Shown: positions 24,567 to 64,000 of the stretch, in pieces
Numbering within the stretch: position 1 is the first letter of the stretch
Layout of the letters: every line of letters begins with the position of its first letter
Assembly: GCA_946965045.2 (NCBI GenBank)
Contig: OX337241.1
Coordinates: forward strand, 1,054,001 to 1,118,000
Reading direction: 5' to 3'
Source of the DNA: Epithemia pelagica
Lineage: Eukaryota > Protista > Bacillariophyta
Length of the DNA stretch: 64,000 nt
Made by a program: the position numbers and the translations under genes
The notes under the pieces: generated by a model
Database searches by the model: none
What the model saw: the letters and a program-made list of their open reading frames with translations, nothing else
Told to the model about the DNA's origin: nothing

Positions 24567-25858
24567 TCAGAGTTTAGGAATAATTTTGGTTACCTTTCCA
24601 TCTACATGTGTGTGCCGTTCGCAACCATGCCCATTCTTCCATTGACTCGTTGTCATCGTGTGACACTCAACCGAAAAAGGTGGATAATGCAAACTGGGAG
24701 GAAGTTTGGCATTGTACGCCTCCATACTCAGATACGTTTCATTCCAGGTCAAGTTCAAAAAGGCAAACACCTCTGACATGACTTGGTTCGGATCCTGGTA
24801 GAAACGGGTCACGTTGACCACATGAATACCGTCCGGAAACAAGGTTTGTGCAGATTCAAGACTGTGCAGGAATTGTTTACGCTTTCTCTTCGTGGCTCTT
24901 TCATTCACTCCACGTCGGGCCCAGGCCTGTGCGAGTCCCTCATAGTCTCGTTCCATGACAACCACGGGAATGCCAGGAGCTCGTTGCATTACTGTGGGCA
25001 AAGTGTAGACATAACCGGGCGTCTTATCCACCAGATATGATTCATGATCGAGCTGTTGACGTCGAGAAAAGAGCGGAGACGCTTGACGCAACGTATGGTA
25101 CATTTCGGCATGACAGGATGACCCATGGACCATCTGATAACGTTGTGGTACGGTCAGATTCCATGCCCAAAAAGGATCAACCATCCATTCATAAAAAGGA
25201 TGTACGTGTTCAAAGTCTGCCGGACTTGAGCCCAGCAGTATGCCGCCTTCAAATCCACCCATGAGGGTTGGATGAGACATGACGAGTTTAGAAACAATTG
25301 TGGTTCCGGATCGTTCCATACCCGTTAAAATGACTGCAAGACCACTGGCTTCCTTGAATGAGTGCTAACTTTTTCAAAAATGGCTTCAATCTTTGTTGAT
25401 AGAGCAGAGTCCAGGGAAGGCGTGGAAGTGACCTCGATCCCGGAGTTTTGCAGCGCATGAATTGGTTCCGTGCTGTTATCTTGACTTGGGATGAGGGGAG
25501 ACTGGTTTTCCTCTTCAAGAAGCAATGGTACCATTGTGTTTTTACTGGAGATGGGTGATGCAAGTTTCAGAGGCTTTGTGTCATTGCCTTTATTGAATGC
25601 TGTAGTTTTATTTTGCTTTCCTTCGTTTGCGTTCATCTTCGTTGGAACCGGCCGAAGTGGAATGTTTTGTCTGTTCCACCACAAAAAGTGGGCAACGCAA
25701 TAAATTCCAACAATTCTCAGGAAAATAGAAATCCATTTACCTAACGGCCGTGTCTTTGTAGAGGTTTCATGTTTGAACCGAACTGTCTCTTGATTCTTTC
25801 TCGTGTGTGATCCATTTCTCGCGTTTGTTCGATTCTCAATTGCATGAGCGATAAACAT
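24567..25858 (-). pseudogene. Sulfotransferase-like gene (P-loop Sulfotransfer_3 type) with a 1-bp frameshift near 25365
   Basis: The TM/stem ORF (25325-25858) and the catalytic ORF (TGMERSGTT, LVDKTP) are in different frames. Five nt (GTTAG) replace the six nt (AGCAAG/AGTAAG) found in the paralogs at 27294 and 51645. Confidence 0.75.
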
Positions 25859-26738
25859 GACGGAGCGTACCTACCTGGTTGTTTTGCAGAGAAGGAGAAG
25901 AGGGATGTGCAACTCTGGGACACCCACGATGATTGATACCAAGCAGCATTTTCCATGGATTTATGACAACGATCTGGACGCAGCTAGGGGGGAGCAGAAG
26001 GGGAGCAAAAGGGGCATCATCGTCTTGCATGTTGGCATGGTGCTCCTCGAGTGGCCGACGCGAGAAGGTGCGCCGGGCCTGTTTCTTTTAAGTCTATTTA
26101 AGGGATAGTTGACGTTGAGAAGGTGCTACCGGCGGTCGTATTTAAGTGGTAAAATTTCCAACCGATTAATTATTCCTATGTCGATGACTGTTTTAAAAAT
26201 ATGAGAGAGGCCTGCTTGCCGGCGTACGCCGTCCTTCTGTTCACATAAATACACGGCTTGGCATCAATCGTCGTGGGCCCTTCTCGTACCCCCTAGCGGA
26301 AGCTCGAGTCCCGCTCGTGAATGGGTAGAGGTACATTCGCTCCAATCAGGAATCACTCAACCAGGACTCACCCTTCCGCTAGGGGTAGCATTCGAGGGTC
26401 ATTGGTTTCTCGCAATGGAAACAGAGATCCGTAGCGAAGAGAGGCAGGCGCGCGTACGACAATGATTGAATTGTGAATGCTCGCTACTATCAATGGTTAT
26501 ACATCCAATGTAATTTTGGAGTAAAAGTACTCGTGTAGGCTGTGAGTGTGCGAGTCTGTCTGTCTGTGTGTGTTTTCGCGAAGGGCGAGGCACGCGCATG
26601 GCGCGAGCCGTTACACCTCTACGCGCTCGTCCGCCTCCACTAACCTTTGAGCTTGCCACTTTTTTTGCATGAGCGATGTGTTGTGTGTTGTGTGTTCGAG
26701 TTTTGGGTTGAACAGAAAACAGAAACCCATCATCCGTC

Positions 26739-28058
26739 ATGTTTCTCGCTCATGCATTATGGAATCGATCAAAAACGATCAAGAATCACGAGACAGTTTG
26801 TTCGAGAAATGGAACCTCCACCACGACAGCGCCTTCTACAAAAAGGATCCATACAAAGCTACCAGCTTATCGTTACCATTCGGTTCCATCGTTTTATATT
26901 TTCGTAACCCTTGTTGGGATTTGCTGTCTTTCCCATTCCTTGTGGTGGAACCGACAATGTTATCATCCTACGATGACCTACATCGAGGGGCCCATCGCCA
27001 CCACAAACACACCTCAAAGAAAGCACGCAACATCCAACTCCACCACTACGTCCAGAAAAGACAATGATACAAATCATTCCACACTTTCATCACCACATTC
27101 CTTCATCTCGAGTACAGACACAACGTTTGCACTGGTTGTTCAGGAACACAACCATGAACACAACCATTCTGTTCTCGTCACCACTAATGACACCACGAAA
27201 CCAATTCATGCTATGTCGAACTTGAATAACGAAGCCACTGCTCTTGCTTTACCCCTTTCGGATCCGCCAACCCTGGAAACTATATGTGAAAAAAGCAAGC
27301 ACTCATTCAAGGAAGCCAGTGGTTTGGCTGTGATTGTGACTGGCATGGAACGGTCCGGAACTACCATTGTCTCTCGACTCATCATGTCTCATCCAACCCT
27401 CATGGGTGGATTTGAAGGCGGTGTACTGCTGGGCTCAAGCCCGGCAGACTTTGAACACATACATCCTTTTTATGAATGGATGACGGGTCCCCAATACATG
27501 TGGAATTTGACCTCATCCCAACGAAATGAAATGGTCCACGGGTCATCCTGTCATGCTGAAATGTACCATACGTTGCGTCAAAAGTCTCCACTCTTTTCTC
27601 AAGGTCGACAGCTCAGCAGGCACAAAATGTATCTGGTGGATAAGACGCCCCGCTATGTTTACACCTTGCCCACAATAATGGAACGAGCACCTGAAATTCC
27701 CGTAGTGGTCATGGAACGAGATTATGAGGAACTCGTAGAGGCCTGGGCCCGACGCGGAGTGAATGAAACAGCCACGCAAGAAAAGCGTAACCAATTCCGG
27801 TACAGTCTTGAATCTGCACAAACCTTGTATCCGGATCGTATTCATGTGGTCAACGTGTCCCGTTTCTACCAAGATCCGAATCACGTCATGTCAGAGGTGT
27901 TTGCCTTTTTGAACTTGACCTGGAATGAAACGTATCTGAGTATGGAGGCGTATAATGCCAAGCTTCCACGCAGCTTGCATCAACCGCCCTTTTCGAGTCA
28001 TTATTATCCTTCGTCAAAAGAGTATAAACCGGAGAATGAACATGCCCAACCACAATGA
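26739..28058 (+). CDS. Sulfotransferase-like type II membrane protein (Sulfotransfer_3 type)
   Basis: Intact 439-aa ORF; TM FYIFVTLVGICCLSHSLWW; PAPS-binding VIVTGMERSGTT; LVDKTP; VVVMERD. Confidence 0.82.
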   Translation: MFLAHALWNRSKTIKNHETVCSRNGTSTTTAPSTKRIHTKLPAYRYHSVPSFYIFVTLVGICCLSHSLWWNRQCYHPTMTYIEGPIATTNTPQRKHATSNSTTTSRKDNDTNHSTLSSPHSFISSTDTTFALVVQEHNHEHNHSVLVTTNDTTKPIHAMSNLNNEATALALPLSDPPTLETICEKSKHSFKEASGLAVIVTGMERSGTTIVSRLIMSHPTLMGGFEGGVLLGSSPADFEHIHPFYEWMTGPQYMWNLTSSQRNEMVHGSSCHAEMYHTLRQKSPLFSQGRQLSRHKMYLVDKTPRYVYTLPTIMERAPEIPVVVMERDYEELVEAWARRGVNETATQEKRNQFRYSLESAQTLYPDRIHVVNVSRFYQDPNHVMSEVFAFLNLTWNETYLSMEAYNAKLPRSLHQPPFSSHYYPSSKEYKPENEHAQPQ

Positions 28059-28299
28059 ACAAGCTGCAAGGTTTCGTGGGACGAGAATGTACATTAGAAC
28101 CAGGGCTTTAAATCGATTTTCATTGTGAAGTACTCTGGTTCTGGAATTGGAGCTAGTAGGGAATGCTGCTATCTTTGCACAAATTTACAAACTCGTGGCC
28201 CTTTATAAACTAACACCAATAACTTATAATTGATCAGTCGTCGGCAACGATCGATTATTACTTCTGATTGACACAAACATCTTCCAAATTTTGCTTTCC

Positions 28300-28723
28300 A
28301 CTACTATGCTGCTTTCTTCTCCACCCCCTTGTTCTTGACCTCGTAAACTTGCCAGTAGAGTCGGGAGATGGCTTTATCAGCTGGGGTCTCGCCAACACCA
28401 CCCACGTGCCACATCCATGCCGTCTCCATGTTCAGGGCCGAACGGAAAAAGTCCAAGTGGACTACGAGGGACTGGGGAAAGGTCAGGAAGGACAGCAGAC
28501 TCGTGAGCAAGGCAGAGGGGGCCAACGAGTGTTGCAACCAGCCATAGTGGTTTCGATTCAGGATGCTGGTCATGCGGTGGTCATGGTGGTTGTGTCTTGA
28601 AGTAGGCAGTAGGACTTGTTGTGGAGGTTCCATGTCTCGAGCAAACTGTTCGGTGATGCCATATCGTTTTTGATCGATTCCACCACATTCCATGAGCGAG
28701 AAAATGAGTGCAAAAATATGCAT
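28300..28723 (-). pseudogene. Degenerate 5' relic of the same sulfotransferase family
   Basis: The reverse complement of 28620-28685 (TGGAATCGATCAAAAACGAT..GAACCTCCAC) matches 26760-26825. The TM-like LVATLVGPLCLAH parallels FVTLVGICCLSH, but the frame contains stops. Confidence 0.6.
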
Positions 28724-29228
28724 TCGACAAAGCCAACATATCGAGTGGTGATTATACGGCTCTCCTCCTCTCGGGCTCGGGTTGCAGTCTCGTTGAGAGA
28801 TGGGTTCTGTTCTCCAGGCGAGAGATCAAAACAAGAAAGTGTCCTTGAAAAAGTGAGCGCTCGATTTCAAGGTGTGACGGCTCGTGAGTAGCGCGAGCCG
28901 ATGGATCCCGCACGCTAGCCCAGTCGGACAATGTCAACACGCAAACAAACCCAATCTCAGAAATCTTCACGGACACAAGAAAACAAATACAATGACTCCT
29001 CTTTGTAGGATGATGGCAGATTCTCTTTGCACATCATACGGAAACACAAGACTGGATAGCCAGTGTTTACTGCAACGATTGCGATTGCTACTACTACTAC
29101 AACAACGACGACGACAAGGCGTGTCGCACCCAAGACTCGGCACAAATGGTCAACGACATTGCTGCTTTGTCACCTGCAATAGTAACCCATCTTCCAATAT
29201 CCGCAGTGCGAAACATGTGCATGAACGA

Positions 29229-30368
29229 ATGACTCAATCTCCCTCGTTCAGCGCCTCTGTCCTTCGTGCGTGGGAAGCAACTGGATTGAAAGAGCTGCTA
29301 CACCACAATGAGAGAACAATGCCGTCCGATCAAGATTGTGCTGCTACCTCGTTGCTTCAAGCCCATTTGATGCAAGCATGTCATGGCGTGACGGCCGAGT
29401 TGACATTTTACGAAAAGGTTCGAGACGTTTTGGAGGCAAAAGGAAACTCGAATACCAACATGGTGCCAATGGAATCTTCACTCTTGTATGAATATGAGTC
29501 GATCCGAGCGCCTAGCTCAGCCGTGGCCTGTGTGGCCTTGTTTGGAAACTTTTTTCATACATGTCCGCTCGACCAGAGTCCTTTGCTTTCCAGCAAGACA
29601 AGGTATCACAGCGACAAGCGATTTCAAAAGCTCATGGACTTGTCTTCCTTGATTTCTGGAATTGACAACGACTTGCAATCCTACCAGAAACAAGATGATT
29701 CTGATTGGAACAGCATTACCATTCGAACCGTATTTGGAGGCAAGACGCTACGCAAAGCCTTTGATGAGGTCTGTCAACGGCACTTCGACTTGGTACAGGC
29801 CATGAGAGCACTCGGAGGGCAGCTTCAAGAGGATTATCCCACCGACTCCAACCATATTGCCGTCTGGGTGAATATCATACTCCCGAATGTCCATCGTGGC
29901 TTTGTATCTTGGCAATCCCATGTCAAGCGATACAGGAACGAAGGTGATGATGCTACGAATGGCACGTTACTAACAGACAATCTACTGGAACGGCTTTTCC
30001 CTGGAGAGCCGTATCACCAAGTTTCATCAGAGGATGGAACCTTTCCAGGCATGAATGTAGAGTTATATCATTCACTCCATTCGAGTCTCATGGAATGGGC
30101 GGCATCTTGTCGACAAATTGGATCGACAGATGCGACCAAGTATATTGCGGTTGCCAATCCCGCTTTGTTGGCCTTGTTGTTGTTTTCCTATTGCAATCGG
30201 GCAGCAACAGATCTCACACAAGAGGGCCACGACGCGCTAATAGTATTTGTCAAGTTCTTTACATTTCTGTCCATTGTGGATGACATGCTGGAGAATCCCC
30301 AACTGCACGTGCCTACCAAACAAGTCTTTCTTCAATGCATTGAGTCCATGACCATGGACCATCCATAA
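29229..30368 (+). CDS. Microbial-type class I terpene synthase-like protein with permuted motif order
   Basis: YEYESIRAPSS (pyrophosphate-sensor Arg), NDLQSYQKQ (NSE-like, 29667) and WQSHVKRY (WxxxxxRY, 29910) come first, then an N-terminal-type half ending FTFLSIVDDMLE (DDxxE, 30279). The frame is open from 28884; ATG 29229 is a guess. Confidence 0.68.
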   Translation: MTQSPSFSASVLRAWEATGLKELLHHNERTMPSDQDCAATSLLQAHLMQACHGVTAELTFYEKVRDVLEAKGNSNTNMVPMESSLLYEYESIRAPSSAVACVALFGNFFHTCPLDQSPLLSSKTRYHSDKRFQKLMDLSSLISGIDNDLQSYQKQDDSDWNSITIRTVFGGKTLRKAFDEVCQRHFDLVQAMRALGGQLQEDYPTDSNHIAVWVNIILPNVHRGFVSWQSHVKRYRNEGDDATNGTLLTDNLLERLFPGEPYHQVSSEDGTFPGMNVELYHSLHSSLMEWAASCRQIGSTDATKYIAVANPALLALLLFSYCNRAATDLTQEGHDALIVFVKFFTFLSIVDDMLENPQLHVPTKQVFLQCIESMTMDHP

Positions 30369-30562
30369 TCTACCAGAATGCAAAACATCAGGGTAGTCGA
30401 AAGAGAATCATCGGGTCGTGGATCAGTCGACATTGCTTCCCTCCAAAACCTGAGAGGCATATAACAACCGGAGATTTTATGTCAAGTTTTGGTTGGTTCT
30501 GTGCCCTTGCGCTAGAAACGCATTCGGGAGATGGTTGTTTGAATAACCACAACTTTGAGGGA

Positions 30563-31300
30563 ATGCCGTCAATCAATAAGAGTGGATCCTTCTTCTTCAA
30601 GGCAGGCCATACCGCAAGGATAAACGCTCAACCAAGCGAACCGTTTTCTGTCTTTCTGATAGGACCGTCATCAACGGGAAAGACACATCATATTCAAGAG
30701 CTTCAAGAATCTCTCCCAGCCGTCACGAAGGGCGCTGATGTGACCTTCCATTTTGGGATTGCCCGTGATTTTCTACAAAAGCGCGGTATCACAGGAAAGG
30801 ATTTGCTGAATGACAAGAAATTACACATGGAACTACAGGAGTTTTTGGTTCATAAATACAGTGTTCTTCAGCAAGACCCAGTCAAGTGTGGTAGCACCAC
30901 CACCTGCCAGAATGTGCATATGCAAGCAAGCACCAGGAATATTCGTATTTTCGACCGCTCTGCAATCGACGCCATTGTGTATGCCAAACAATATGGTACG
31001 GACCAGGATGCCATGGCGCTGCGAGCTGGGGCAAACTTTCAGTCCTGTGTAAAGCTCTATCGCAATCCGAAAAGCTCGTTGGTGGTTTTGTTTCCTGTCA
31101 TACCTCAACTCGTGAAATCCGATGGTATGCGCATCCATGGAGATGTCGCTGAACAAAACGCCTTGTTTCGGCAATATGAAAGTACCATGAAAGACCTTGG
31201 CATTCCCTTTGTCGTCTTGGGCACAGACTTGAAGCACCGAGGCAAGTGGTTGCTGTCTCGAATTTGTTCTGGAACTGGACACGATACAGGAATCCATTGA
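30563..31300 (+). CDS. AAA_28/NadR-type P-loop NTPase or nucleoside-kinase-like protein
   Basis: Walker A VFLIGPSSTGKT, IFDRSAIDAIVY and DGMR, as in AAA_28 proteins. Confidence 0.75.
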   Translation: MPSINKSGSFFFKAGHTARINAQPSEPFSVFLIGPSSTGKTHHIQELQESLPAVTKGADVTFHFGIARDFLQKRGITGKDLLNDKKLHMELQEFLVHKYSVLQQDPVKCGSTTTCQNVHMQASTRNIRIFDRSAIDAIVYAKQYGTDQDAMALRAGANFQSCVKLYRNPKSSLVVLFPVIPQLVKSDGMRIHGDVAEQNALFRQYESTMKDLGIPFVVLGTDLKHRGKWLLSRICSGTGHDTGIH

Positions 31301-31578
31301 GTATTCAACCAATGCTCGTTTCGGAAATTCTCATGACACAGGAAACCGTTGAGTATTCAATATTCAACCAATGCTTGTTTCGGAATTTCTCTATGTAGGT
31401 GGTATCTCCTGTCAACTGTCAAGGATAGCGATGGAGGCAAGACATGGACATCTATGGATACAACGATAAAAGGACTAAATGCACTGGACAATTCGAATAC
31501 TACCTAGTTTAACGATTTTGTGTTCATCTGTTCGTGCACTTTTGTGGACTGGTGATGGATTGAGAAAGAGACAAGCGT

Positions 31579-34500
31579 TTAGTGCGAACCTAAATCTGAC
31601 TTGACTGTTTTCAAAATACTGTCATCTTGTGATAGCCACTCCATCCAGAGCGAATCTCTCTGTAGCGTATCCTTGCGTCCTATGACAACTAGACCACGCT
31701 TTGCCCGTGTCCACATAACGTTCAATCGTCGGTGGTCTTTGAGGAAACCCAAGTTACTGCGGCAACGAACGGCCGAAAACAGAATGATCGTACGTTCTTG
31801 GCCTTGAAAGCCATCAACAGATCGGACATCAATCTGTGTATTCTTCAAACGATTTTGAATACATTGTACTTGACCAGAATACCCAGTGATGACTCCAATA
31901 TCTTTCGGTTCGAGGTTCTTAGAATCGAGAAGACGTGATACAATATTGACCACTTCCTCCGCTTCTACATGATTGCTCCATGTTGTTCCTATACGCTTTT
32001 CTTCTCCGTCCACGTCAACAAACGCAAGGTAATGAGTTCCGCACCATGGAGCCTCTTTGATTAGAGCAACACTCTCTAGGCTGTGGTCAGTTCGAACCTT
32101 GTCATCGTAGAACTTCAAGAAGGAGAACTTCATCAAAGAAGGATGCATACGATATTGAGTATTAAGCATCACGCAAGGAATGTTGCTGTCGTTTTTAAGA
32201 CGTTCGAACAAACTTTCTTGAAACCCAAACTCTTTGGAAGATTCATGCACTGTTGCCTGTAGCTGTTTGTCATCACCGATCAAGACAAAACGTGTCCTTG
32301 CCTTACATGTAGCAACTCGGGTATTGCAGCTCGTCAGCTGGCCTGCTTCATCGACTATCACAGTATTGAATTCGTTATCCTGGCGTAGCAAACCAACTCC
32401 CGACCCAGTCGCAGTTGAAAATACAACCCGAGCAGTGGTAATAATCTTCTTCATTTCTTTCTGCTTGCATTTTTCGTCATTTTCTTTCAGCGATTCGTGG
32501 TACTCAGGAAGAAAGCGTTGCAAAGATGGCTCCACTTGGCCCGATTCCCCGACACGCACGATCAATGACTCGACGTCCTCGCGATTCAATTTGTGCAATT
32601 CGGAAATGAGCTTAGACAGAATATTGTCCACAGCCTGGTGAGTCGTTGCTGACACAAGAATTCTTTCTTCTCTCGCAAGCAACGCAAGTATGAGACCAAC
32701 CACCGTAGAACTTTTTCCGACAGCAGGCGGTCCCCAAATGAGGCTTACTCGATGTTCGATCGCAGATTTGATAGCTTTCGTTTGGGACCCATTCAACTGG
32801 GTCCATTTCATTCCACTCCGTGTCTCATCATCATCATCAATGTCTTCTAGTGTTCCTGGTTCGACCTGCGGACGACTTGATGCTTCGAACATGACTCGGT
32901 GAGTCGTGGCGTTTCCCACCCTCCATACTTTCCAGTCCACACACTCAACCTCAAAAGGCATCAGACTCAACACCTCAATCTCTAGATGTCCTGCATCGGA
33001 AAATTGCTTGACAACGGCATGGAACGATTGGGAAGTGTAGTCTTTGTGGTTGTTCGCGGGACACATTGCACGAAAAACAAAAACATCTCCGGCACGGATT
33101 TTCTTCCAGACGACACTGTGGGAAACGTTGGGGTCAAGTGTGAGGCCAAAATTCTGTCCTTTGCGTCTCTTGACACTTGCGTAAATCATTATAGGATCTA
33201 CAGATCTCTTGCCATCCAGATCTAGGCTCTTGTAGTTCTCTTCCAGCGTACATTGCAAGTCAACATAAAGTCCCAACACCGATTTGTGTTCATCTTTGTC
33301 GAAGGAAGCAAGAACAACCTCACGAATTTCATGCACCCATTGCGAAACACATGAGGTTAGAGCTAGAAATTCAAGTGTCTCAACCCATTCGTCCGCAGAT
33401 GCTTCGATGCATTTCTTTACCAATTGAATGGGAAGTTTGGATAAGTCGGTATGGTTGTGAATAGATCTCAACAAGCATTTCTTGGATTCGGGAGTATTGG
33501 GTAAGCATTCACTTATTTGGAGTGCAGATGATAACTCGGGTAGTGCATCAATGTCGATGACAAGTCCTTGCATCTCGAGGAGCAATATCAACGAAACATC
33601 GACAGCTACACTGTGCATATGAAACTCTCTGCAGACTTGAATGAACTTGTGAAGTTGTCCGTGCTCAAGATGTGGCAATTCAGTTTCCTCGTGGGCCGTT
33701 GCAAGCCTATAGAGACAAAGCACATCTTCATATTCATCAGTTTGGAGAAAATCAGCTTCCAGTTTTACATCGTAAGACCTTGGTGACCCTCCAGCTTCCT
33801 CCACTTCCGTTGTGACCACATCTTTGGTTCCAACATTGTAGTGCCTCACTTCGGGATCCTTGTCGCAGACGACATACATCTCAACACGCTGAAGTCTCCT
33901 TTTCGTGACTAGATCAAATTGTGCCTTTGCATTGTTTCCAAGTCGGCCCAAGTCAATACTAATTCTACCAAACACTTTAGCGTTGACATCGTCCATCTCA
34001 TAGGGGCATGTCGACATCCAAACAAAAGTATTTCGTGGGTCTCCTGGACCTTTCATGGAGATCTGGAAAAGTTGGCCAGTTAATGCCAATTGATACTGTC
34101 CACCATGAAGACGACTAATGCTCCTGAACGAACCATAAGGATTCGTGGAGAACACGTGGACGTCTTTATGCAGTATGTTTCTCCCCTCATTGAACTGTTG
34201 CTCCAATTGTAGGCAGAGTGTCAGACGGTCGTCGACTTCGATAACGAGTAGTTTCCTTGTAAACTGAACCAATGATGAGATAACTGAATTACCAAATGGA
34301 GCTCGATAGTCACTCTCCGAACTGTAAACGCGCTTCCAGTTGAAGGTCTCAGCAAAACGGAAAGCATCGATGTCGTGTTTCTTGAGAATATTCGACTGTA
34401 AGATCTCATTTTTAAGCAGACAGTTCAGTTGGGGACACTCTTTCAGAGCCCACACTCTTTGTGCCTCTGTAAATCCGTGTAGATCAATATGGGCCAGCAA

Positions 34501-34641
34501 TACGCGGTCAATTTCTTCCAAGTTGTCTGAACGAGCTGTTCTCTGAATCAAACGCAGCATTTCGAATTGTGATATATTCTGGAAGCGGCTACTCGACGAC
34601 AGAAGCCAATGCAGAAGCTGTTGAAAATCGGCCTGGTCCCC
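31579..34641 (-). CDS. UPF1/DNA2/NAM7-like superfamily 1 helicase; in-frame continuation of the RdRP after one TAG
   Basis: GPPAVGKS, VIVDEAGQ, LIGDDKQL, SLFERL, LNTQYRMHP, SVDGFQGQE and RRLNVMWTRAK. The frame is open from 34641, 27 codons before the ATG at 34560. Confidence 0.9.
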   Translation of the reverse strand, partial: GDQADFQQLLHWLLSSSSRFQNISQFEMLRLIQRTARSDNLEEIDRVLLAHIDLHGFTEAQRVWALKECPQLNCLLKNEILQSNILKKHDIDAFRFAETFNWKRVYSSESDYRAPFGNSVISSLVQFTRKLLVIEVDDRLTLCLQLEQQFNEGRNILHKDVHVFSTNPYGSFRSISRLHGGQYQLALTGQLFQISMKGPGDPRNTFVWMSTCPYEMDDVNAKVFGRISIDLGRLGNNAKAQFDLVTKRRLQRVEMYVVCDKDPEVRHYNVGTKDVVTTEVEEAGGSPRSYDVKLEADFLQTDEYEDVLCLYRLATAHEETELPHLEHGQLHKFIQVCREFHMHSVAVDVSLILLLEMQGLVIDIDALPELSSALQISECLPNTPESKKCLLRSIHNHTDLSKLPIQLVKKCIEASADEWVETLEFLALTSCVSQWVHEIREVVLASFDKDEHKSVLGLYVDLQCTLEENYKSLDLDGKRSVDPIMIYASVKRRKGQNFGLTLDPNVSHSVVWKKIRAGDVFVFRAMCPANNHKDYTSQSFHAVVKQFSDAGHLEIEVLSLMPFEVECVDWKVWRVGNATTHRVMFEASSRPQVEPGTLEDIDDDDETRSGMKWTQLNGSQTKAIKSAIEHRVSLIWGPPAVGKSSTVVGLILALLAREERILVSATTHQAVDNILSKLISELHKLNREDVESLIVRVGESGQVEPSLQRFLPEYHESLKENDEKCKQKEMKKIITTARVVFSTATGSGVGLLRQDNEFNTVIVDEAGQLTSCNTRVATCKARTRFVLIGDDKQLQATVHESSKEFGFQESLFERLKNDSNIPCVMLNTQYRMHPSLMKFSFLKFYDDKVRTDHSLESVALIKEAPWCGTHYLAFVDVDGEEKRIGTTWSNHVEAEEVVNIVSRLLDSKNLEPKDIGVITGYSGQVQCIQNRLKNTQIDVRSVDGFQGQERTIILFSAVRCRSNLGFLKDHRRLNVMWTRAKRGLVVIGRKDTLQRDSLWMEWLSQDDSILKTVKSDLGSH

Positions 34642-36513
34642 CTAACGCTCAGAGTCCACACAATCATTTTCTGCTCGGAGAAAATCAGTTATCAGGTCGT
34701 TTGCAAGATTATCCGCATGACTGATAAGAACTTCAATGATTGATGGCTTGCTATCATGAGTTTCCTCTGGAAGTTTTTTAAGATCTGAATCAATCTCAAT
34801 CGGCTGTCCGTCCACACAGCGACTGAAAAGCGCATTAAGTTTGAGTGCTTCACGACAAGTCGCACCTTTTGCTTTTACCCAATCCAGGTACAAGTTCTTG
34901 ACTTGGCCAAGGGAAGCATTGTTGAACTTAGCAAAGTAGCGCACCATATCAGAACGTTCAATCGTGTGCTCGTTTTGGGGGATTTTAGCCGGTGGATATT
35001 TGCATGGCTTGAACTCCGTTGTAGGAATAAGATCGCGATCGAAGATGACCATAAATTCATCACCGTCTAGATCTCCACCTGACATCTCGTCAGCATGAGA
35101 CCGTTGCAGACCATCATTCGTCGAGAACACAACACAGTCTACTAGATGATGGAAATCTGGAACATCGACCAGTTTCAGCTTGCGCATATCCCCCGGATGT
35201 AGACAGGGGTTACGAGAAACTAGCACATACCCCTCGGTGAGAGTTAGTGGTAACCCTTCAACAGTGACACGGACGAAGATTTCATCGGTCCCAAGCTTTC
35301 TTTCAGGTTCTGCCACCCCCAAAAGGAGGCGTGATTCCGGAAGAAGAATTCGGACCTTCCGGTTATTTCTCTTGTCAAACGTTTTCTTCAGCTCTCTTTT
35401 GACGGCTCCTCGTACCTCGCATCGGGTTGCCCGGAGTCCTTTGTCCACAAGTTTATGCATAGCTGGAAACGCTTCTTGGTACGCAAGTAACTGAAACGCA
35501 GCTTCAGGGTCCGTAAAGGCCGAGCGAAGAAACTCAAAATGGTTCTCCTGTTTGGTCAAGAGCGTTTCCTGAGATATTCCCATCTCGGAAAGAAGATTGA
35601 CATACTCAGCATTCAGTGCACCAAACGAGTACGGCCTCGAAGCTTTGATAACGCCAAAAGATGTACTTGAGGATCCTTTGAATTTGCGCATGGAGGGGCG
35701 ACATTGGACCAAAACGCCTTGTGGTATGTCCTTGTGAAGTGCCAACACACCTTTGTAGCCTTGGTACCGAAATTGAATCACACTTGGGTGGTATCTTTCG
35801 CCTCGAAACACCACAGGGCTCCAAGACTCATTTTTCGGAATACGCTTCACAAGCTCTTTGGACATGAGACCACAGCCATCCGTCAGTAACTCTCCCGAGG
35901 ACGTTAGAATATCATCGATTTCTTGAACTCGATCAGCATTGACAGTGATATTGGTCTTTGTTTCAGAAAACAGGAGGGCAATCCGCTTTGTCATTTTCGC
36001 GCATGTTTTCATATCGAAATCGCCCATCGCATTGATCAAGGACGTGATCTCATCGGGGGATCGATTGAGGAGGTAAGCTTTGCCATCCTTTAAACCCGAA
36101 TTACTGCATCCATAAAAGTGGAAGTGATCAGACCCTGAGAAAAGCTGTACACCCCACTTCAGCACCCTTTCCTTGAACTGGGATTTTGCTTTGGGTCCCA
36201 TGTTCTCTCCGTCCCCAAAGCTAAGTTTGATAACTTCATGTGGTTTCAAGCCTTGAAAAGCACGGCATGAGGGCAATTCGTCGAAAAACTCAACTTTGGG
36301 AGGATCATTTGGCGCCGTTAAACTGAACGTCACGAAACGATTCTTTTGCCGTATGATGCTCAAGTCTTGTCGGCTCAACCCCTCAATCATGAATGGTGGT
36401 GGTGGTGGCTTGCGCTTTCCTTGTTTTGGGCGCCAGGAGTTGTTTCTATGAGACGATTGGTCTCTTGGATTTCGTGCCCGTGGCTTTGCGGATCGAGAGG
36501 TTGTTCGTACCAT
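34642..36513 (-). CDS. Eukaryotic cellular RNA-dependent RNA polymerase (RDR type)
   Basis: Catalytic SGGDLDGDEF; also TDGCGLMS, QFRYQGYKG, RPSMRKF, SRNPCLHPGD and DCVVFS. The N-terminus is short and there are no introns. Confidence 0.93.
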   Translation of the reverse strand: MVRTTSRSAKPRARNPRDQSSHRNNSWRPKQGKRKPPPPPFMIEGLSRQDLSIIRQKNRFVTFSLTAPNDPPKVEFFDELPSCRAFQGLKPHEVIKLSFGDGENMGPKAKSQFKERVLKWGVQLFSGSDHFHFYGCSNSGLKDGKAYLLNRSPDEITSLINAMGDFDMKTCAKMTKRIALLFSETKTNITVNADRVQEIDDILTSSGELLTDGCGLMSKELVKRIPKNESWSPVVFRGERYHPSVIQFRYQGYKGVLALHKDIPQGVLVQCRPSMRKFKGSSSTSFGVIKASRPYSFGALNAEYVNLLSEMGISQETLLTKQENHFEFLRSAFTDPEAAFQLLAYQEAFPAMHKLVDKGLRATRCEVRGAVKRELKKTFDKRNNRKVRILLPESRLLLGVAEPERKLGTDEIFVRVTVEGLPLTLTEGYVLVSRNPCLHPGDMRKLKLVDVPDFHHLVDCVVFSTNDGLQRSHADEMSGGDLDGDEFMVIFDRDLIPTTEFKPCKYPPAKIPQNEHTIERSDMVRYFAKFNNASLGQVKNLYLDWVKAKGATCREALKLNALFSRCVDGQPIEIDSDLKKLPEETHDSKPSIIEVLISHADNLANDLITDFLRAENDCVDSER

Positions 36514-36841
36514 GCTAGCAAGGGTTAATCGAGATGTTTCGTCAATGATGGTCTTGATATGGTTTGAGAAAACTGTGCCGTTGTTGGATCACCCGTCTCA
36601 TAGAAGGGAGCCCGGTTTACGTACTTGAGTTTGTGTCCAACCAAAGAACGGCATAAAATGTGGCGGATGTGTAGCGTGTCAAGATTGAAAGTTCACCGAA
36701 AAACGCGAAAAATACCACCAACCAGATGGCGAATTAAAATCATATTGAATCGATCTGCGCTCGTAGAGCTGTCACGGTTTCGATTGGATGTGACAGGAAA
36801 GATTTTTCATCCATAAGGATGAAAAGTAGAAAGCCAATACC

Positions 36842-38265
36842 ATGGTCCTGACAATCCTTTCGGCGACATGGACCAGCGCTCGAAGTGCTGTGGCATTGTC
36901 ACACGTTACAACAATCTTGGAATCTGGAATGTGCGTGTCGTTGTTCCTGCTGTGGCTGCCCTGGGCGCACCAGATCGCCTGGTTCTACTACCGCATGGTA
37001 GTGGATTCCTATCTCTTTTCCTTTCGAACCGTGTCCGAGGTTGCGGATCGAGCCTGTCAGGAAGAAACAAGCAATCAGCCCGTCATTCGATTCCCCTATG
37101 GACAACGAACCATTGTGTTTTCAAACAAGGACGACGTCGCCTACATTCTTTCCAATCCCAAGGTGAACAAAAACTACCGAACCCGATTTGCCACAAACTT
37201 TGGACTCAACATGTTGGGAATGTACAAATCTGGCTTGATCTGGAACAATGATTTGGGATCATGGCAAAGCGTCCGCCGGTGCTTTGATCATACCTTGAGT
37301 ACCAGCACTCTCAACAGGCTCCAGAGCTTTGTCCAAGATCAATTTCCAAAGATACTCGAGAAAATGCCTCGCGACGAGAATGGAGGGACCATTGACATGT
37401 TGGATGCGCTTCGATGGATGACCCTCAACATCACTCTCGATATGATGCTCGGCTTGCCTGTTGTGGATGAGTGGAACAAGGCTCAAGGAATTCTTGAAGC
37501 TATCGTTGCCTTTTTCAAAGCCTGGGAGTTCTTTTTGGTTCGTCCATATATTGTGTCCGTGCTCCGACCCGGCTACCAAAAGCATGCCATGGCAAGGTAG
37601 GTTCCTTATAGACCACGATCATGAGGTCAGCAGACAAACTGACTCACAACTATTTGTTGATTGACCTGTCGTCGGGTTTTCATTCTTGTACAGTCGCCGA
37701 TTGCATGAGATTAGTGAAGGCTTGTTGTCGGATTACGATAGACAACGCGAGCAACATCCCGAGAAAAAGTCGCCCTTGTTGGACAAGGCCATGGAAAATA
37801 CAGAACTTGCTCGAAGCGATCTCGTGCAATTGGTACTGGAATCCTTGTTGGCTGGAGTGGACACTTCCTCGGTATCGCTGTTTTACACGTTGAGTTTTTT
37901 GTCGCAAACCGAGAATCGAGATATGCTTCGACAGGCGGTGGAGGAGGTTGACACCTTTGTACACCATGGCGACAAGATTAAAGCCATGTCCTTGCCGTTC
38001 ATCCGAGCATGTATCAAGGAAGCCATGAGACTCAAACCTGTCGGACCCATTATAATGCGCAAGGCAGCCCAACAGGACAACGTAGGCACCACTATCATCC
38101 AGCCCGGCGATTCGATTATTCTGAACCTGGCCCAAATGAATCTCAAGGGTGTGGAAACCTCCTACTCGCCAAGTCGGTTCTTGAATGAGGAGGGCCAGCA
38201 TACACCCGACGCCCAGTTACCCTTTGGATACTTTCCATTTGGCGATGGTCCCAAAGGATGTGTCG
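36842..38265 (+). pseudogene. Cytochrome P450 resembling the CYP19 (aromatase) clan, truncated just after the heme Cys; intron 37597-37693
   Basis: I-helix LESLLAGVDTSSVSLF, ExxR (EAMR), and heme motif FGDGPKGC (Cys codon 38259-38261) followed by unrelated sequence. The GT..AG intron restores the frame. Confidence 0.85.
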
Positions 38266-52690: not shown

Positions 52691-53807
52691 CAGGGTCATG
52701 GCGTGTGCAACCTTCCGACTGAGGCTTATTAATGTTTTGCCAATTGTTGGCGGACACGGCCGATTTGTGGGCCAACGACAGTCGAACATGTTGACCGGCC
52801 GACAAGGCGCGAATGGGACGCAAAATGGTATAACGTGACAATCCATAATCTCACAAATGCTGTCGTATCTGTGTTTTGGTCCGGGACGATGAGGACGTGA
52901 TGGCACTAGTATGATCATCCTTGAGTGTCATGGCTCGGAGAAAGAATTCCATGGCAGATTGAGATCCGTGGTCTCGAACCAAATCATGAAGCGCCGTCTG
53001 CGGGAAATACAAACAGCTTTGTTTGCTATTCATCGTTCGGCAATTCATTGGGAGCAACACCAGCAGTAACAGCCGCAATGGGAAAGGCTTGGGAGAAGGT
53101 GTCGGGGGAAGGACGTCGCATGAAGCGAGTAGATGAGGCATCCGATGGAATGGTGGACATGGAACTAGCTGCTTCAAGGCTCAGAAAGGTTGATGGTTCG
53201 GATTCCTCGGAGGTTCGACTTGGATGGGCCAATGGATCCTTCTGCGCCATAGGGGTTTCATAGGCTTGCGGATCGACCGTGGGAAACGAAGCGAAACGAG
53301 GCAGAGACGAAGGATTGTTGTTGCTGGTGGATGGGGTGGTGGTTTGGTTTTTGGCGATGCTTTCATCTTGGTTGTTAACAGACGCCGTCGACCTTTCGGA
53401 AACACTGTGAGCGTCAAATAGCTCCCTTACTTCCTTCTGAGTGAGGCGGTGCCGTTTGTGGGAGGAAGACGACATTAAAGAAGATGTTCTGGACCACTGC
53501 ACCTCCACCATCGTGATGAATGAGGGTGCGTTGCATGAATTTTGCATCAGAGTCGAGAGAGACCAGGTCGAGCCGTGGGGGTGAGTAGACGAATGCACGA
53601 AGTGCATTCAATCACGCGTGATTGGACTCACCCCATGCTTGGGGGTAAAATTACGGTAGCAGTGCGTGTTGGACGGATGAGAGTGGAAAGCGGTCGACAG
53701 TCCACAAGCTTTTGAGAAGGAAGATATTCGCAGTTGTTGTAGATGGGAATAGGTTGTTTGTTTGTGCAATTCATACAGGAGGGCCTATTTACTATCTGCG
53801 ATATACT

Positions 53808-55457
53808 ATGAGTCAAGTTGCGCCGCACCCTGACCCTTTGCCAAACACATTCAGCCCCTCTTCCGTCCTGTTGACGTTCCTACCACCAGAGGATCACCCC
53901 GAAGACGTCAACCAGCTTTACATCCGACTTCCTGAAAAAACGCGCAAGGGTTTTACAAAGGATGATCTAGCGGAGTATCTTGATTCACGTGATCCAAAGG
54001 CAACGCAAGACAACCTCGTTGAAGCAATAAATGAAGGGGGGCACATTCCCCCTGCCATCTTGAAAGACGCCGTGGGCAGAAGCGCCGAATCGAAACTACA
54101 GAGTATTCACAGGCTTAACATCAGTCCAAGACAAGTCGACGTCTTGATTGCACAGGTTCTGTTCGAGAACAAATACGCTCTGCCGAGACCTCTAGATCCC
54201 TACAACTATGCGACGCATGGGATCCAACAATCGTATGAAACGCTCACAACAAATGCTCTTTTCAGTACGAGATCAATCATTCGACTACAAGGCGATTCGG
54301 TTCATTTTATGATGTTTGCCTTCGGTCAATCACAAATACGATGCAAGAGATTTTCGTTTGGAGAAAATCCGGTGCTCTCTGCGTCGGGTGTCGTACAGGG
54401 CAATCCGTGCAATATCGACGAAAAGCTGTGCAATGTCTTGGGGATAGCAGATTGCCAAGATAGTCTTGGCAACCACGCCTTGCGCCTGGGGATGATTCAG
54501 CATATTGTGCAAACAGGGACTTTTGACGAGTTGGGTGTCCAGGCGTTGTTCTGCCACTGGCTAGGTGAACTCGTACGTCACTTAGATGGCATTGATGGTG
54601 ATTTGAGAGTGACAGATGTCACTGGTATGGCCTCGATGGTCGTTACAGTTGAAGTGTGTAATGAGTATTTAGCCTTGCAACACAAACCTATCAACCCCGA
54701 TGGGACTGGATTGCCTGCACAGCTCTCCATGAAGAGCGACTTCGTTGTTTGCAAGAATTCTCTACAAGGCAACACAGCCAATGCTTTTCTGTATTCGGCC
54801 TATCATGTTGAGATGAAACAAGCATTCAAGCTGAAAAACTCAGCAATGGACTGCAAGTCGCAGCTTCTAGCGGAATCACTTGCCAGATCGCTTTCTTTAC
54901 TCAACAAGGATAAGGAGTTACCTCAAGTCCTCTATTCAATGCTTTGTGATGGTCTTTGTCTCCACGTACTGGTGCATTTTCCTCGCAGCAACGTCGCCTA
55001 CCTTTCTCATCGTGAAATTGAACCAGGTCGGATGACGTGTGTCGTGACATGGCTACACAATGTCGCTGCGAGAAAGAATCTTACAGAGGCCGAGTTTCTT
55101 GAGATGGGATTACAAATCGGCGATTACTTGGACGCCGAGGTGAAAGAAACATTGCAGAAGAAACGAGAACGGAAGCCGGAACCAGGTCGCAGAAGGACCG
55201 AAGGGAAGCCCAAGAAAAATTTGGGATCAATTGCTCCCAAGAGTAAGACAATGTGCATTGATGTGGTCGCGGACGAGGAACGTGAGCGTCTGGAGGCCGA
55301 ACAAAGGGAATTTTCGGCTTTCCTAAGTTTCCAAAACCATTACCGATACGGTGACCCGTTGCCCTTGACAGAGACCATCCTAAATCACTCTGGCAACACT
55401 CACGAAGAAGCACCGTTGTCAATGGAAGAAAAGCTGTTGCGTGCAGGCTTTGTCTGA
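53808..55457 (+). CDS. PD-(D/E)xK restriction-endonuclease-fold protein (CRN/CR-REase-like), copy 1
   Basis: Intronless ORF; KSDFVV...HVEMKQ...QLLAES fits the D..ExK..Q pattern; charged C-terminal tail. Confidence 0.55.
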   Translation: MSQVAPHPDPLPNTFSPSSVLLTFLPPEDHPEDVNQLYIRLPEKTRKGFTKDDLAEYLDSRDPKATQDNLVEAINEGGHIPPAILKDAVGRSAESKLQSIHRLNISPRQVDVLIAQVLFENKYALPRPLDPYNYATHGIQQSYETLTTNALFSTRSIIRLQGDSVHFMMFAFGQSQIRCKRFSFGENPVLSASGVVQGNPCNIDEKLCNVLGIADCQDSLGNHALRLGMIQHIVQTGTFDELGVQALFCHWLGELVRHLDGIDGDLRVTDVTGMASMVVTVEVCNEYLALQHKPINPDGTGLPAQLSMKSDFVVCKNSLQGNTANAFLYSAYHVEMKQAFKLKNSAMDCKSQLLAESLARSLSLLNKDKELPQVLYSMLCDGLCLHVLVHFPRSNVAYLSHREIEPGRMTCVVTWLHNVAARKNLTEAEFLEMGLQIGDYLDAEVKETLQKKRERKPEPGRRRTEGKPKKNLGSIAPKSKTMCIDVVADEERERLEAEQREFSAFLSFQNHYRYGDPLPLTETILNHSGNTHEEAPLSMEEKLLRAGFV

Positions 55458-55627
55458 CTTTCTGTACATTGCCATGAGAAACAAAGATACACGACGGCGC
55501 ATCTCGTAATGGTGCTCGGTCTGCACCTTGCCTTGGTTTCCGATGTTGCGCTGCTACCCCCATCCTTGGATTCCTCGCTGCCTCCCGCTTTGTTCCAATC
55601 ATATTCTGGTCTCTCATCAACACCCCA

Positions 55628-56493
55628 TCAATGTAAAACTCCATACACCGTGATCCTTCCACACAGTTTCAAGAGGCTGGAGAAAGAAACACTTGCGAGT
55701 TTGTCAGGGACCGTCGGTGGACCTTGTTGTTGTTGTTGTTTCTGCAAGGCATTTAAACTACAAGTCGCCGCTTGCACTTCCAGCACCACAATGGCCAAGG
55801 CGAATGCGACATGGTAGACCGTCACACTGGAAAACCAAACCAAAAGGGTAATTTGCCACCAATCATTGGATTGGACCAAGAGTGATAGAATGCAGGTGAT
55901 CAGGGGAATTCCCAACAAGACGACAAAGGTTGGCCATTCGACTCCAATCAAGCGTTTCATAGTTGTTGCATCTGAATGACTCGATGCCACAAATCCAAAC
56001 CGGAATGGCGCAGAGTGTGCCAATGAATTTTCCAACAGACCCCGACGACGAGGCGTCGGGTTGCGCTTCCAATTCTTGGAACTGCTGTTTCAAAACGTTG
56101 CAACGCCTCTGTCAGTTCCTCTTCTGTATAGTAATCAAAGGGGTGGAACAAAGCGCACGACATCTTTTCCGGCCGCAACCAGCAACAATCCTTGATCATC
56201 ACGGTCACACACCTTTCAAGAGACCCCAGCCTCGCACAGGTCCCACCAAGGCGGGATACTTTGCGGCAATCGCCTCGAGACCGGCAGCCAATTGGTCTCC
56301 TCGGGCTTGTACATTGTCCAAGACATACTGCTCGGAAAAATAATATTGTGCCAGTACCTACGGGCAACAGAAGCAAAATCCGCAGCAAAAGCCTTCCCGT
56401 CCCTTGAGAAAACTGCAGATACGAGGTCCAACGAAAGAACAACCACCACCAAGAGAGAGAATTGTTAGAATTCGGTCCACAATCGCACCACAC
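55628..56493 (-). pseudogene. Fragmented membrane-protein gene relic (second copy at about 59509-60392)
   Basis: Several short frames with hydrophobic stretches (PTFVVLLGIPLITCILSLLV, WQITLLVWFSSVTVYHVAFALAIVVL); present in both tandem units. Confidence 0.35.
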
Positions 56494-57348: not shown

Positions 57349-57688
57349 CTGTATTTGTGCTCTTATCGGCTGTTCCAATAAATAAGGTGGAGAGGCTTTT
57401 CTAAAGGGGGCTTGGGGTATCTATTGCCCCAGGGGCTTCGGGTGTGAGAATGCTCACCAGATCTGCTTCACTAATCCTCATGACTCACACCCGCTGGGGG
57501 GTAACATTTGGTGGTGCTTAACTTCCCCAAATTACGGTAGCAGTGCGTGTTGGACGGATGAGAGTGGAAAGCGGTCGACAGTCCACAAGCTTTTGAGAAG
57601 GAAGATATTCGCAGTTGTTGTAGATGGGAATAGGTTGTTTGTTTGTGCAATTCATACAGGAGGGCCTATTTACTATCTGCGATATACT

Positions 57689-59338
57689 ATGAGTCAAGTT
57701 GCGCCGCACCCTGACCCTTTGCCAAACACATTCAGCCCCTCTTCCGTCCTGTTGACGTTCCTACCACCAGAGGATCACCCCGAAGACGTCAACCAGCTTT
57801 ACATCCGACTTCCTGAAAAAACGCGCAAGGGTTTTACAAAGGATGATCTAGCGGAGTATCTTGATTCACCTCATCCAAAGGCAACGTAAGACAACCTCGT
57901 TGAAGCAATAAATGAAGGGGGGCACATTCCCCCTGCCATCTTGAAAGAACTCGTGGGAAGTAGGGCCAAATCGAAACTACAGAGTATTCACAGGCTTAAC
58001 ATCAGTCCAAGACAAGTCGACGTCTTGATTGCACAGGTTCTGTTCGAGAACAAATACGCTCTGCCGAGACCTCTAGATCCCTACAACTATGCGACGCATG
58101 GGATCCAACAATCGTATGAAACGCTCACAACAAATGCTCTTTTCAGTACGAGATCAATCAATCAACTACAAGGCGATTCGGTTCATTTTATGATGTTTGC
58201 TTTCGGTCAATCACAAATACGATGCAAGAGATTTTCGTTTGGAGAAAATCCGATGCTCTCTGCGCCGGGTGTCGTACAGGGCAATCCGTGCAATATCGAC
58301 GAAACGCTGTGCAATGTCTTGGGGATAGCAGATTACCAGGATAGTCTTGGCAACCACGCCTTGCGCCTGGGGATGATTCAGCATATTGTGCAAACAGGGA
58401 CTTTTGACGAGTTGGGTGTCCAGGCGTTGTTCTGCCACTGGCTAAGTGAACTCGTACGTCACTTAGATGGCATTGATGGTGATTTGAGAGTGACAGATGT
58501 CACTGGTATGGCCTCGATGGTCGTTACAGTTGAAGTGTGTAATGAGTATTTAGCCTTGCAACACAAACCTATCAACCCCGATGGGACTGGATTGCCTGCA
58601 CAGCTCTCCATGAAGAGCGACTTCGTTGTTTGCAAGAATTCTCTACAAGGCAACACAGCCAATGCTTTTCTGTATTCGGCCTATCATGTTGAGATGAAAC
58701 AAGCATTCAAGCTGAAAAACTCAGCAATGGACTGCAAGTCGCAGCTTCTAGCGGAATCACTTGCCAGATCGCTTTCTTTACTCAACAAGGATAAGGAGTT
58801 ACCTCAAGTCCTCTATTCAATGCTTTGTGATGGTCTTTGTCTCCACGTACTGGTGCATTTTCCTCGCAGCAACGTCGCCTACCTTTCTCATCGTGAAATT
58901 GAACCAGGTCGGATGACGTGTGTCGTGACATGGCTACACAATGTCGCTGCGAGAAAGAATCTTACAGAGGCCGAGTTTCTTGAGATGGGATTACAAATCG
59001 GCGATTACTTGGACGCCGAGGTGAAAGAAACATTGCAGAAGAAACGAGAACGGAAGCCGGAACCAGGTCGCAGAAGGACCGAAGGGAAGCCCAAGAAAAA
59101 TTTGGGATCAATTGCTCCCAAGAGTAAGACAATGTGCATTGATGTGGTCGCGGACGAGGAACGTGAGCGTCTGGAGGCCGAACAAAGGGAATTTTCGGCT
59201 TTCCTTAGTTTCCAAAACCATTACCGATACGGTGACCCGTTGCCCTTGACAGAGACCATCCTAAATCACTCTGGCAACACTCACGAAGAAGCACCGTTGT
59301 CAATGGAAGAAAAGCTGTTGCGTGCAGGCTTTGTCTGA
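57689..59338 (+). pseudogene. PD-(D/E)xK-like protein, copy 2, with a CAA-to-TAA nonsense codon at 57887-57889
   Basis: Near-identical to 53808-55457 and in one frame apart from the single TAA. Confidence 0.8.
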
Positions 59339-61037
59339 CTTTCTGTACATTGCCATGAGAAACAAAGATACACGACGGCGCATCTCGTAATGGTGCTCGG
59401 TCTGCACCTTGCCTTGGTTTCCGATGTTGCGCTGCTACCCCCATCCTTGGATTCCTCGCTGTCTCCCGCTTTGTTCCAATCATATTCTGGTCTCTCATCA
59501 ACACCCCATCAATGCAAAACTCCATACACCGTGAACCTTCCACACAGTTTCAAGAGGCTGGAGAAAAAAACGCTTGCGAGTTTGTCAGGGACCGTCGGCG
59601 GACCTTGTTGTTGTTGTTGTTGTTTCTGCAAGGCCTTTAAAATACAAGCCGCCGCTGGCACTTCCAGCACCACAATGGCCAAGGCGAATGCGACATGGAA
59701 GACCGTCACACTGGAAAACCAAACCAAGAGGGTGATTTGCCACCAATCATCGGATTGGACCAAGAGTGACAGAATGCAGGTGATCAGGGGAAATTCCCAA
59801 CAAGATGACAAAGGTTGGCCATTCGACTCCAATCAAGCGTTTTATATTTGTTGCATCTGAATGACTCGATGCCACAAATTGCCCCACGAGGAACTCAAGC
59901 CACAAACCCAAACCAGAATGGCGCAGAGTGTGCCAATGAATTTTCCAACAGACCCCGACGACGAGGCGTCAGGTTGCGCTTCCAATTCTTTAACTATTTT
60001 TTGAACTGCTGTTTCAAAACGTTGCAACGCCTCTGTCCGTTCCTCGTGTGTAGTAATAAAAGGGGTGGAACAAAGCGCACGACATCTTTCCCGGCCGCAA
60101 CCAGCAACAATCCTTGATCATCACGGTCACACCTTTCAAGAGACCCCAGCCTCGCACAGGTCCCACCAAGGCGGGATACTTTGCGGCAATCGCCTCGAGA
60201 CCGGGCAGCCAATTGGTCTCCTCGGGCTTGTACATTGTCCAAGACATACTGCTCGGAAAAATAATATTGTGCCAGTACCTACGGACAACAGAAGCAAAAC
60301 CCGCAACAAATGCCTTCCCGTCCCTTGAGAAAACTGCAGATACAAGGTCCAACGAAAGAACAACACCAACCACCAAGAGACAGAATTGTTAGAATTCGTT
60401 CCACAAGCGCACCACACTGTAGTTAATCCAGTTGCGTCCATCACAAACAGGAACTTACAATGGCGCCATGATAGAATGAAACTGTGTGTCGATTGGATGG
60501 ATTTACGTTTGTATAGAGGTCTTGAATGATGCGACGCTGTTTGGGTGTTATAGTCGAATCCTTCGCTTCTTCTCGAAGACGAGAGGGGGAGATCCGATAT
60601 ATCCAAAAAGATCTTGGATTTTTGGCACATCAATGAGGGGCTTAACATTCCCCAAAACCCGCATGCCTCATTGCTGTATTTATGCTCTTATCGGCTGTGC
60701 CAATAAATAAGGTGGAGAGGCTTTTCGAAAACGAAAGAGTGAGGGGGCTTGGGGTCACTATTGCCCCAGTGGCTTGGGGTCTGTGGTGCTCTCGTGACAT
60801 GAGAACACCACACGTTCCGAATGGACCATCAAAGGTTCGTTCCGACGGCCATGGCAACCGCTACGACCGATCGAGACAGTACAAACACGTTTCTACCTTT
60901 CGAGACTTTATCGTTACAAGGATCCATTAGTATACAGTGGTAAGAGAGAGATCGAGACAGAGAGATCGATGATAATAACGACATTGTAGTTGTTTTGTCG
61001 GGTTTACTCGGCACCAGTCTCGTTTCCTCCATTGCCG

Positions 61038-61495
61038 AGAGCAGAGTCCAGGGAAGGCGTGGAAGTGACCTTGTTCCCGGAGTTTTGCAGCGCATGAATT
61101 GGTTCCGTGCTGTTATCATGACTTGGGATGAGGGGAGACTGGTTTTCCTCTTCAAGAAGCAATGGTACCATTGTGTTTTTACTGGAGATGGGTGATGCAA
61201 GTTTCAAAGGCTTTGTGTCATTGCCTTTATTGAATGCTGTAGTTTTATTTTGCTTTCCTTCGTTTGCGTTCATCTTGGTTGGAACCGGCCGAAGTGGAAT
61301 GTTTTGTCTGTTCCACCACAAAAAGTGGGCAACGCAATAAATTCCAAGAATTCTCAGGAAAATAGAAATCCATTTACCTAACGGCCGTGTCTTTGTAGAG
61401 GTTTCATGTTTGAACCGAACTGTCTCTTCATTTTTCTCGTGTGTGATCCATTTCTCGCGTTTGTTCGATTCTCAATTGCATGAGCGATAAACATG
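61038..61495 (-). pseudogene. 5' half of the second minus-strand sulfotransferase copy
   Basis: Homologous to 25401-25858; truncated by the 9.4 kb insertion, with a small indel near 61430. Confidence 0.75.
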
Positions 61496-63627: not shown

Positions 63628-64000
63628 ACAAGCTGCAAGGTTTCGTGGGACGAGAATGTACATTAGAACCAGGGCTTTAAATCGATTTTCATTGTGAAGT
63701 ACTCTGGTTCTGGAATTGGAGCTAGTAGGGAATGCTGCTATCTTTGCACAAATTTACAAACTCGTGGCCCTTTATAAACTAACACCAATAACTTATAATT
63801 GATCAGTCGTCGGCAACGATCGATTATTACTTCTGATTGACACAAACATCTTCCAAATTTTGCTTTCCACTACTATGCTGCTTTCTTCTCCACCCCCTTG
63901 TTCTTGACCTCCTAAACTTGCCAGTGGAGTCGGGAGATGGCTTTATCAGCTGGGATCTCGCCAACACCACCCACGTGCCACATCCATGCCGTCTCCATGT

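Follow-up and report, generated by a model that had tools for sequence, protein, structure and literature searches.

A diatom gene for a predicted circularly permuted class I terpene synthase

Gene content and motif order at the locus

The stretch analyzed here (the window) comprises 64,000 nucleotides of contig OX337241.1 of the diatom Epithemia pelagica, has about 47% G+C and contains long, mostly uninterrupted ORFs. One of these is a single-exon gene for a protein of 379 residues whose motif order differs from that of class I terpene synthases of the canonical kind (Table 1). The frame is open for 345 nt upstream of the ATG and an alternative in-frame ATG lies within this extension; however, conservation among relatives starts only about 7 aa after the assigned start codon, and the upstream open frame is low-complexity and has no synthase similarity. 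Upstream is an unexpressed stretch with an unassignable minus-strand ORF, while 111 nt downstream of the stop codon, in another frame, is an AAA_28 P-loop gene.

A preliminary description, made from the sequence alone, had proposed that this gene encodes a natural circular permutant in which the sensor Arg, NSE and WxxxxxRY motifs precede a typical N-terminal half, as expected from tandem duplication, fusion and trimming. We were able to confirm the position of each of these motifs in one open frame. From the N-terminus, the protein carries the diphosphate-sensor segment YEYESIR, the NSE-type motif NDLQSYQKQ and the WQSHVKRY motif, and then a junction with LFPGEP, which is followed in turn by EWA, NPALLALLL, FFTFLSIVDDMLE and finally DDMLE, 24 residues from the C-terminus.

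Table 1. Features of the synthase locus and its surroundings (window positions unless marked L001, a contig carrying the second copy).
Feature	Position	Strand	Residues	Remarks
Single-exon synthase gene	29229-30368	+	1-379	stop codon (TAA) 30366-30368; frame open from 28884; alternative ATG at 29010
N-part	29229-29933	+	1-235	canonical helices after the Asp-rich helix through to the C-terminal RY pair
YxxxR diphosphate-sensor segment	29493-29507	+	Y89, R93
NSE-type motif NDLQSYQKQ	29667-29693	+	N147-Q155	N147, D148, S151, K154; last ligand position Gln155, followed by Asp-Asp
WxxxxxRY motif (WQSHVKRY)	29910-29933	+	W228-Y235	canonical C-terminal end of the fold
Junction or linker	29934-30056	+	236-276	acidic stretch, then LFPGEP..EDGTFPG; LFPGEP onward from about 29994
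C-part helices	30057-30365	+	277-379	canonical N-terminal helices up to and just past the Asp-rich helix
Aspartate-rich motif DDMLE	30279-30293	+	D351-E355	C-terminal end of helix 331-354
AAA_28 (PF13521) P-loop gene	30479-31300; L001:11645-12406 and L001:18783-20171	+ (window)		in copy 2 the same domain is fused to the C-terminal half of a P450
Segmental duplication, copy 1	26055-38265			98.7% identical to L001:7166-19362
Segmental duplication, copy 2	from 61618 past the window end			61618-64000 is 98.7% identical to 26055-28431
Duplication with its wider limits	25401-38265 and 61038-64000 (continues; L001:6586-19362)			about 12 kb, about 35.5 kb apart
Inverted copy (81%) of the first 90 nt of the sulfotransferase ORF	28618-28707 and 26737-26824 (also 62306-62393)			upstream of the synthase
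Inverted partial copy (86%) of the sulfotransferase gene	24672-25374 and 27290-27995			just upstream of the duplicated block
(CTA)n(CAA)n(CGA)n run	29088-29119			in the upstream open frame
4-nt insertion (GATC)	behind 30584			in contigs of run X2
Direct repeat of 2.35 kb (98.2%)	53648-55994 and 57529-59879; L001:3077-5427			present only once in L001

The gene lies within a segmental duplication of about 12 kb, as determined by blastn, the second copy of which runs beyond the end of the window and is represented by L001, from an ENA assembly contig of 1.36 Mb. The duplicated block carries a sulfotransferase, the synthase, the AAA_28 gene, an RdRP-helicase gene and the start of a P450 gene. The product of the second synthase copy, P0001, is 97% identical and has the same layout. 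Homology between the two copies ends inside the P450 gene and the P450 copy of the window therefore appears truncated or interrupted. In copy 2, by comparison, the C-terminal half of the P450 (p450 profile positions 222-438) is followed by an AAA_28 domain. It is feasible that these genes represent a small terpenoid gene cluster, but when we looked for a conserved cluster around the relatives on three contigs that could be read (L002, L003 and L004) none of these neighbors was found. Of the repeats near the gene, the 90-nt inverted segment may be a shared promoter or 5' module, or a repeat fragment. The direct repeat is a structural difference between haplotypes or assemblies.

Sequence similarity and predicted structure of the two parts

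Pfam recognized only half a domain in the protein, as residues 86-189 matched positions 100-197 of the 199-position Terpene_syn_C_2 profile (PF19086) at 32.5 bits, above the gathering score of 23.7. Searches of Pfam and of PDB sequences with the last 125-144 residues as a single sequence identified nothing, and consequently the case for a circular permutant rests on a profile of only ten sequences. An exhaustive phmmer scan of 1.84 billion representative proteins produced only 12 hits (none of them a canonical synthase at E 1e-3) that, apart from some fragments, aligned collinearly over nearly the whole query (e.g., query 45-373 on residues 45-358 of the relative P0002). Word-seeded searches with the family alignment and with the relative P0009 added only one fragment. 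Eight of the ten family members match PF19086.

The profile of the back part alone hit residues 46-123 of 10-epi-cubebol synthase (7ZRN) at E 6e-6, with the DDxxE aligned column for column on the DDVCE of that enzyme, and most of its other hits were N-terminal regions of terpene synthases, including T-muurolol synthase (24-84), the N-domain of geosmin synthase (25-95, weakly), aristolochene synthase (52-94) and caryolanol synthase. Conversely, the profile of the front part hit the C-terminal halves of 40-odd solved synthases, with the sensor segment on the corresponding Y..R segment, the NSE-type motif on the NDxxSxxKE of 4OKM, and the RY pair on the terminal RY of 8GR5 and 4OKM. Notably, the whole-family profile hit 7ZRN with two stretches in swapped order at an overall E of 2.8e-11: profile 248-330 matched chain 46-123 with the DDxxE aligned, and profile 115-215 matched chain 235-339 with the ND..S and RY aligned. 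This is far beyond chance and is the sequence signature of a circular permutation.

AlphaFold provided no useful model from the single sequence (pLDDT 35). With the ten-sequence alignment, however, AlphaFold2 predicted an all-helical single domain with a mean pLDDT of 82.2 and a pTM of 0.86, in which only residues 112-122 and the acidic stretch 235-247 (pLDDT below 50) were of low confidence; the C-part helices had a pLDDT of 86-96. In the model the DDxxE is at the C-terminal end of its helix and N147 is at the C-terminal end of helix 130-151, as the two metal motifs are in canonical enzymes. VIA-align placed model residues ~3-236 on residues ~112-340 of class I terpene-synthase-fold enzymes in all 50 top rows, with Z 11.9-16.9 and an rmsd of about 3 A over 170-215 residues; two of these are the N-prenyltransferases DabA and KabA. 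The packing of residues 277-372 against the NSE helix is supported only by the pTM. No sequential full-length match was found in the PDB (Foldseek E at least 0.08, TM at most 0.43), in 2.3 million AFDB fold clusters or in the ESM Atlas representatives, where the matches were partial or meaningless. We interpret this as a consequence of the sequential alignment of a permuted chain and not as evidence against the fold.

In 7ZRN the structural alignment runs from model residue 14 on chain residue 146, while the back part, by the profile alignment, ends near chain residue 135. We infer that the two parts add up to one domain with neither a gap nor an overlap of more than a few residues, although the residue numbering of the entry may differ slightly from the sequence index. 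The junction is also consistent with this inference, as there are 54 residues between Y235 and W290 and about 61 in 7ZRN (counting the tail after RY plus the lead before the equivalent Trp), which is what a nearly direct head-to-tail fusion of two copies predicts.

Conservation, constraint and read evidence

The collinear relatives, about ten in number and 22-39% identical, come from diatom or marine eukaryote data. They include P0002-P0006, P0009 and P0012, one being from Attheya sp. CCMP212 (EukProt) and one set from MMETSP transcripts, with others from marine metagenome or transcriptome contigs. In the alignment of ten sequences the only invariant residues are H185, L199, W228, Q229 and the D351, D352 and E355 of the aspartate-rich motif, whereas Y89, R93, N147, D148, K154 and R234 are invariant or nearly so, and L256 and F257 of the junction are nearly invariant. 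The preliminary description had noted that the terminal Glu of the NSE motif is a Gln, which is correct for this gene and its paralogue; at this position most relatives have Asp and P0002 has Ser. All relatives end 20-45 aa after the DDxxE. One relative, on L005, a 1.58-kb transcript contig, is a complete ORF of 402 aa of the same order with an in-frame TGA two codons before its ATG, which excludes a missing upstream N-terminal half.

The two copies of the gene differ at 25 codons, by 14 synonymous and 12 non-synonymous changes, corresponding to a dN/dS of 0.24 (binomial p 4e-4). The value is 0.19 in the front part and 0.285 in the back part (p 0.024), indicating a significant excess of synonymous changes in both parts.

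Four public sequencing runs (X1-X4) hold the stretch, and contigs of all four carry the junction, as does the second copy in another assembly. Although returned by a search for RNA runs, X1, X2 and X4 behave like genomic DNA, with flat depth and, in X1 and X4, contigs of 0.4-0.5 Mb. Run X3 behaves like RNA, a presumption based on its depth profile: its depth is zero over 28000-28937, 7-30 over the gene and 265 over the neighboring helicase gene. The X3 contigs cover 29002-30387 without a splice joint and carry the variants of both copies, and no splice joints were seen in any of the four runs. The insertion in the X2 contigs, which occurs at about two thirds of the depth, lies inside the AAA_28 coding region and is a frameshifting allele or copy difference. 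Contigs of three runs branch off into unrelated sequence at the trinucleotide run, so this repeat occurs elsewhere in the genome.

Interpretation and comparison with known systems

Based on these data, the interpretation in the preliminary description is supported, and we consider it likely that the gene encodes a genuine, expressed and selectively maintained circular permutant of the class I (ionisation-dependent, bacterial/fungal-type) terpene synthase alpha-domain. The permutation itself we regard as highly likely. The chain begins about 25 residues after the Asp-rich helix of the canonical fold, runs through to the terminal WxxxxxRY, and continues through a linker of about 40 residues into what is normally the N-terminal third. 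We infer that, when folded, the two parts should rebuild one helical bundle in which the DDxxE and NDxxSxxK(Q/D) face each other across the active-site mouth and, together with R93 and R234/Y235, would bind three Mg2+ and the diphosphate of a prenyl diphosphate, ionise it and let the carbocation cyclise. Activity as a terpene synthase is more likely than not, but remains an inference, and the Gln at the last NSE position may alter binding of Mg2+ (metal B). The most likely origin is the head-to-tail fusion of two tandem copies, or a two-domain ancestor, followed by trimming of the outer parts.

An alternative is that the permuted fold is real but the protein has been repurposed, for instance as a prenyltransferase like DabA and KabA or as a diphosphate-binding protein with weakened metal binding. 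The variable NSE ligand, the presence of DabA (6VKZ) and KabA (9M1W) among the structural matches (Z 12.5-12.7) and the AAA_28 kinase-like gene and P450-AAA_28 fusion nearby, which hint at an unusual pathway, are consistent with this possibility, and a changed reaction such as prenyl transfer cannot be excluded. We nevertheless consider it unlikely because the DDxxE, sensor Arg, ND..S..K and RY are all kept as in true cyclases, the profiles of the two parts do not hit the DabA or KabA sequences even at E 10, bacterial and fungal cyclases score higher structurally, and the gene neighborhood is not conserved in the three relatives whose contigs could be read.

That the gene is a functionless relic of tandem synthase genes which happens to keep an open frame is very doubtful. 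Its location in a repeat-rich, transposon-laden region inside a recent segmental duplication and the replaced NSE Glu could be taken to suggest this; however, the retention of the same order and of invariant catalytic motifs in distant relatives, the dN/dS, transcription in the RNA-like run, the complete homologous transcript and the confident model largely refute it. Least likely is a gene-model or assembly artefact, in which a normal N-terminal half lies in an upstream exon and the C-part begins a second domain completed downstream, or in which a tandem repeat was collapsed. The genome is eukaryotic with introns elsewhere and the frame is open upstream, but the flanking sequences hold no further synthase sequence, the downstream ORF is in another frame (a splice to it was considered, but no joint is seen and relatives end at the same place), and the read, second-copy and L005 evidence above argue against it.

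Full-text searches of about 8.4 million papers and preprints identified no description of a permuted terpene synthase and no survey of diatom terpene synthases, although most of the subscription-journal literature lay outside these searches. It is possible, if tentative and somewhat less likely than not, that diatoms carry a lineage-specific family of catalytically active permutants, the first natural ones of this fold, and that in this genome the enzyme works with the AAA_28 kinase-like protein and the P450-AAA_28 fusion to make an undescribed diatom terpenoid. Class I terpene synthases are among the most studied enzyme folds and their motif order is used as a defining feature in genome mining; as Pfam sees only half a domain, this family is easily overlooked. 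A natural circular permutant shows that the fold tolerates new termini next to the Asp-rich helix, offers a natural experiment on how the N-terminal strand and the J-K loop, which cap the active site, work when joined to each other, and would give enzyme engineering a validated cut site. It also points to terpene cyclase chemistry in diatoms.

Of the known systems, DabA and KabA, the N-prenyltransferases of diatoms and red algae (bioRxiv 10.1101/2020.03.31.014811), likewise have a terpene-synthase fold, DabA and KabA matching over the same C-terminal region of the fold. They have the canonical order, however, the family profiles find no sequence similarity to them, and the genes neighboring the permuted synthase are not the dab set. 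The bacterial and fungal single-domain class I synthases, such as 10-epi-cubebol synthase (7ZRN), selinadiene synthase (4OKM) and Cop4 (8GR5), share the alpha-helical fold of residues 3-236, the DDxxE, sensor Arg, NDxxSxxK and WxxxxxRY, and a total length of about one domain. They differ from the diatom protein in chain order, which in this protein and in all full-length relatives is permuted, with the cut about 25 residues after the Asp-rich motif and the old termini joined by the linker; in addition, the terminal NSE Glu is Asp, Gln or Ser and sequence identity is very low. The two-domain (alpha-alpha) germacradienol/geosmin synthase has two complete domains, whereas only one DDxxE and one NSE/RY set are present in the 379 aa, and no first N-terminal half or second C-terminal half is present in the ORF, its flanks or its homologues. 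Interestingly, the succession of a C-terminal half of one domain, a linker and the N-terminal half of the next is what the middle of such a protein looks like; it is a plausible kind of ancestor.
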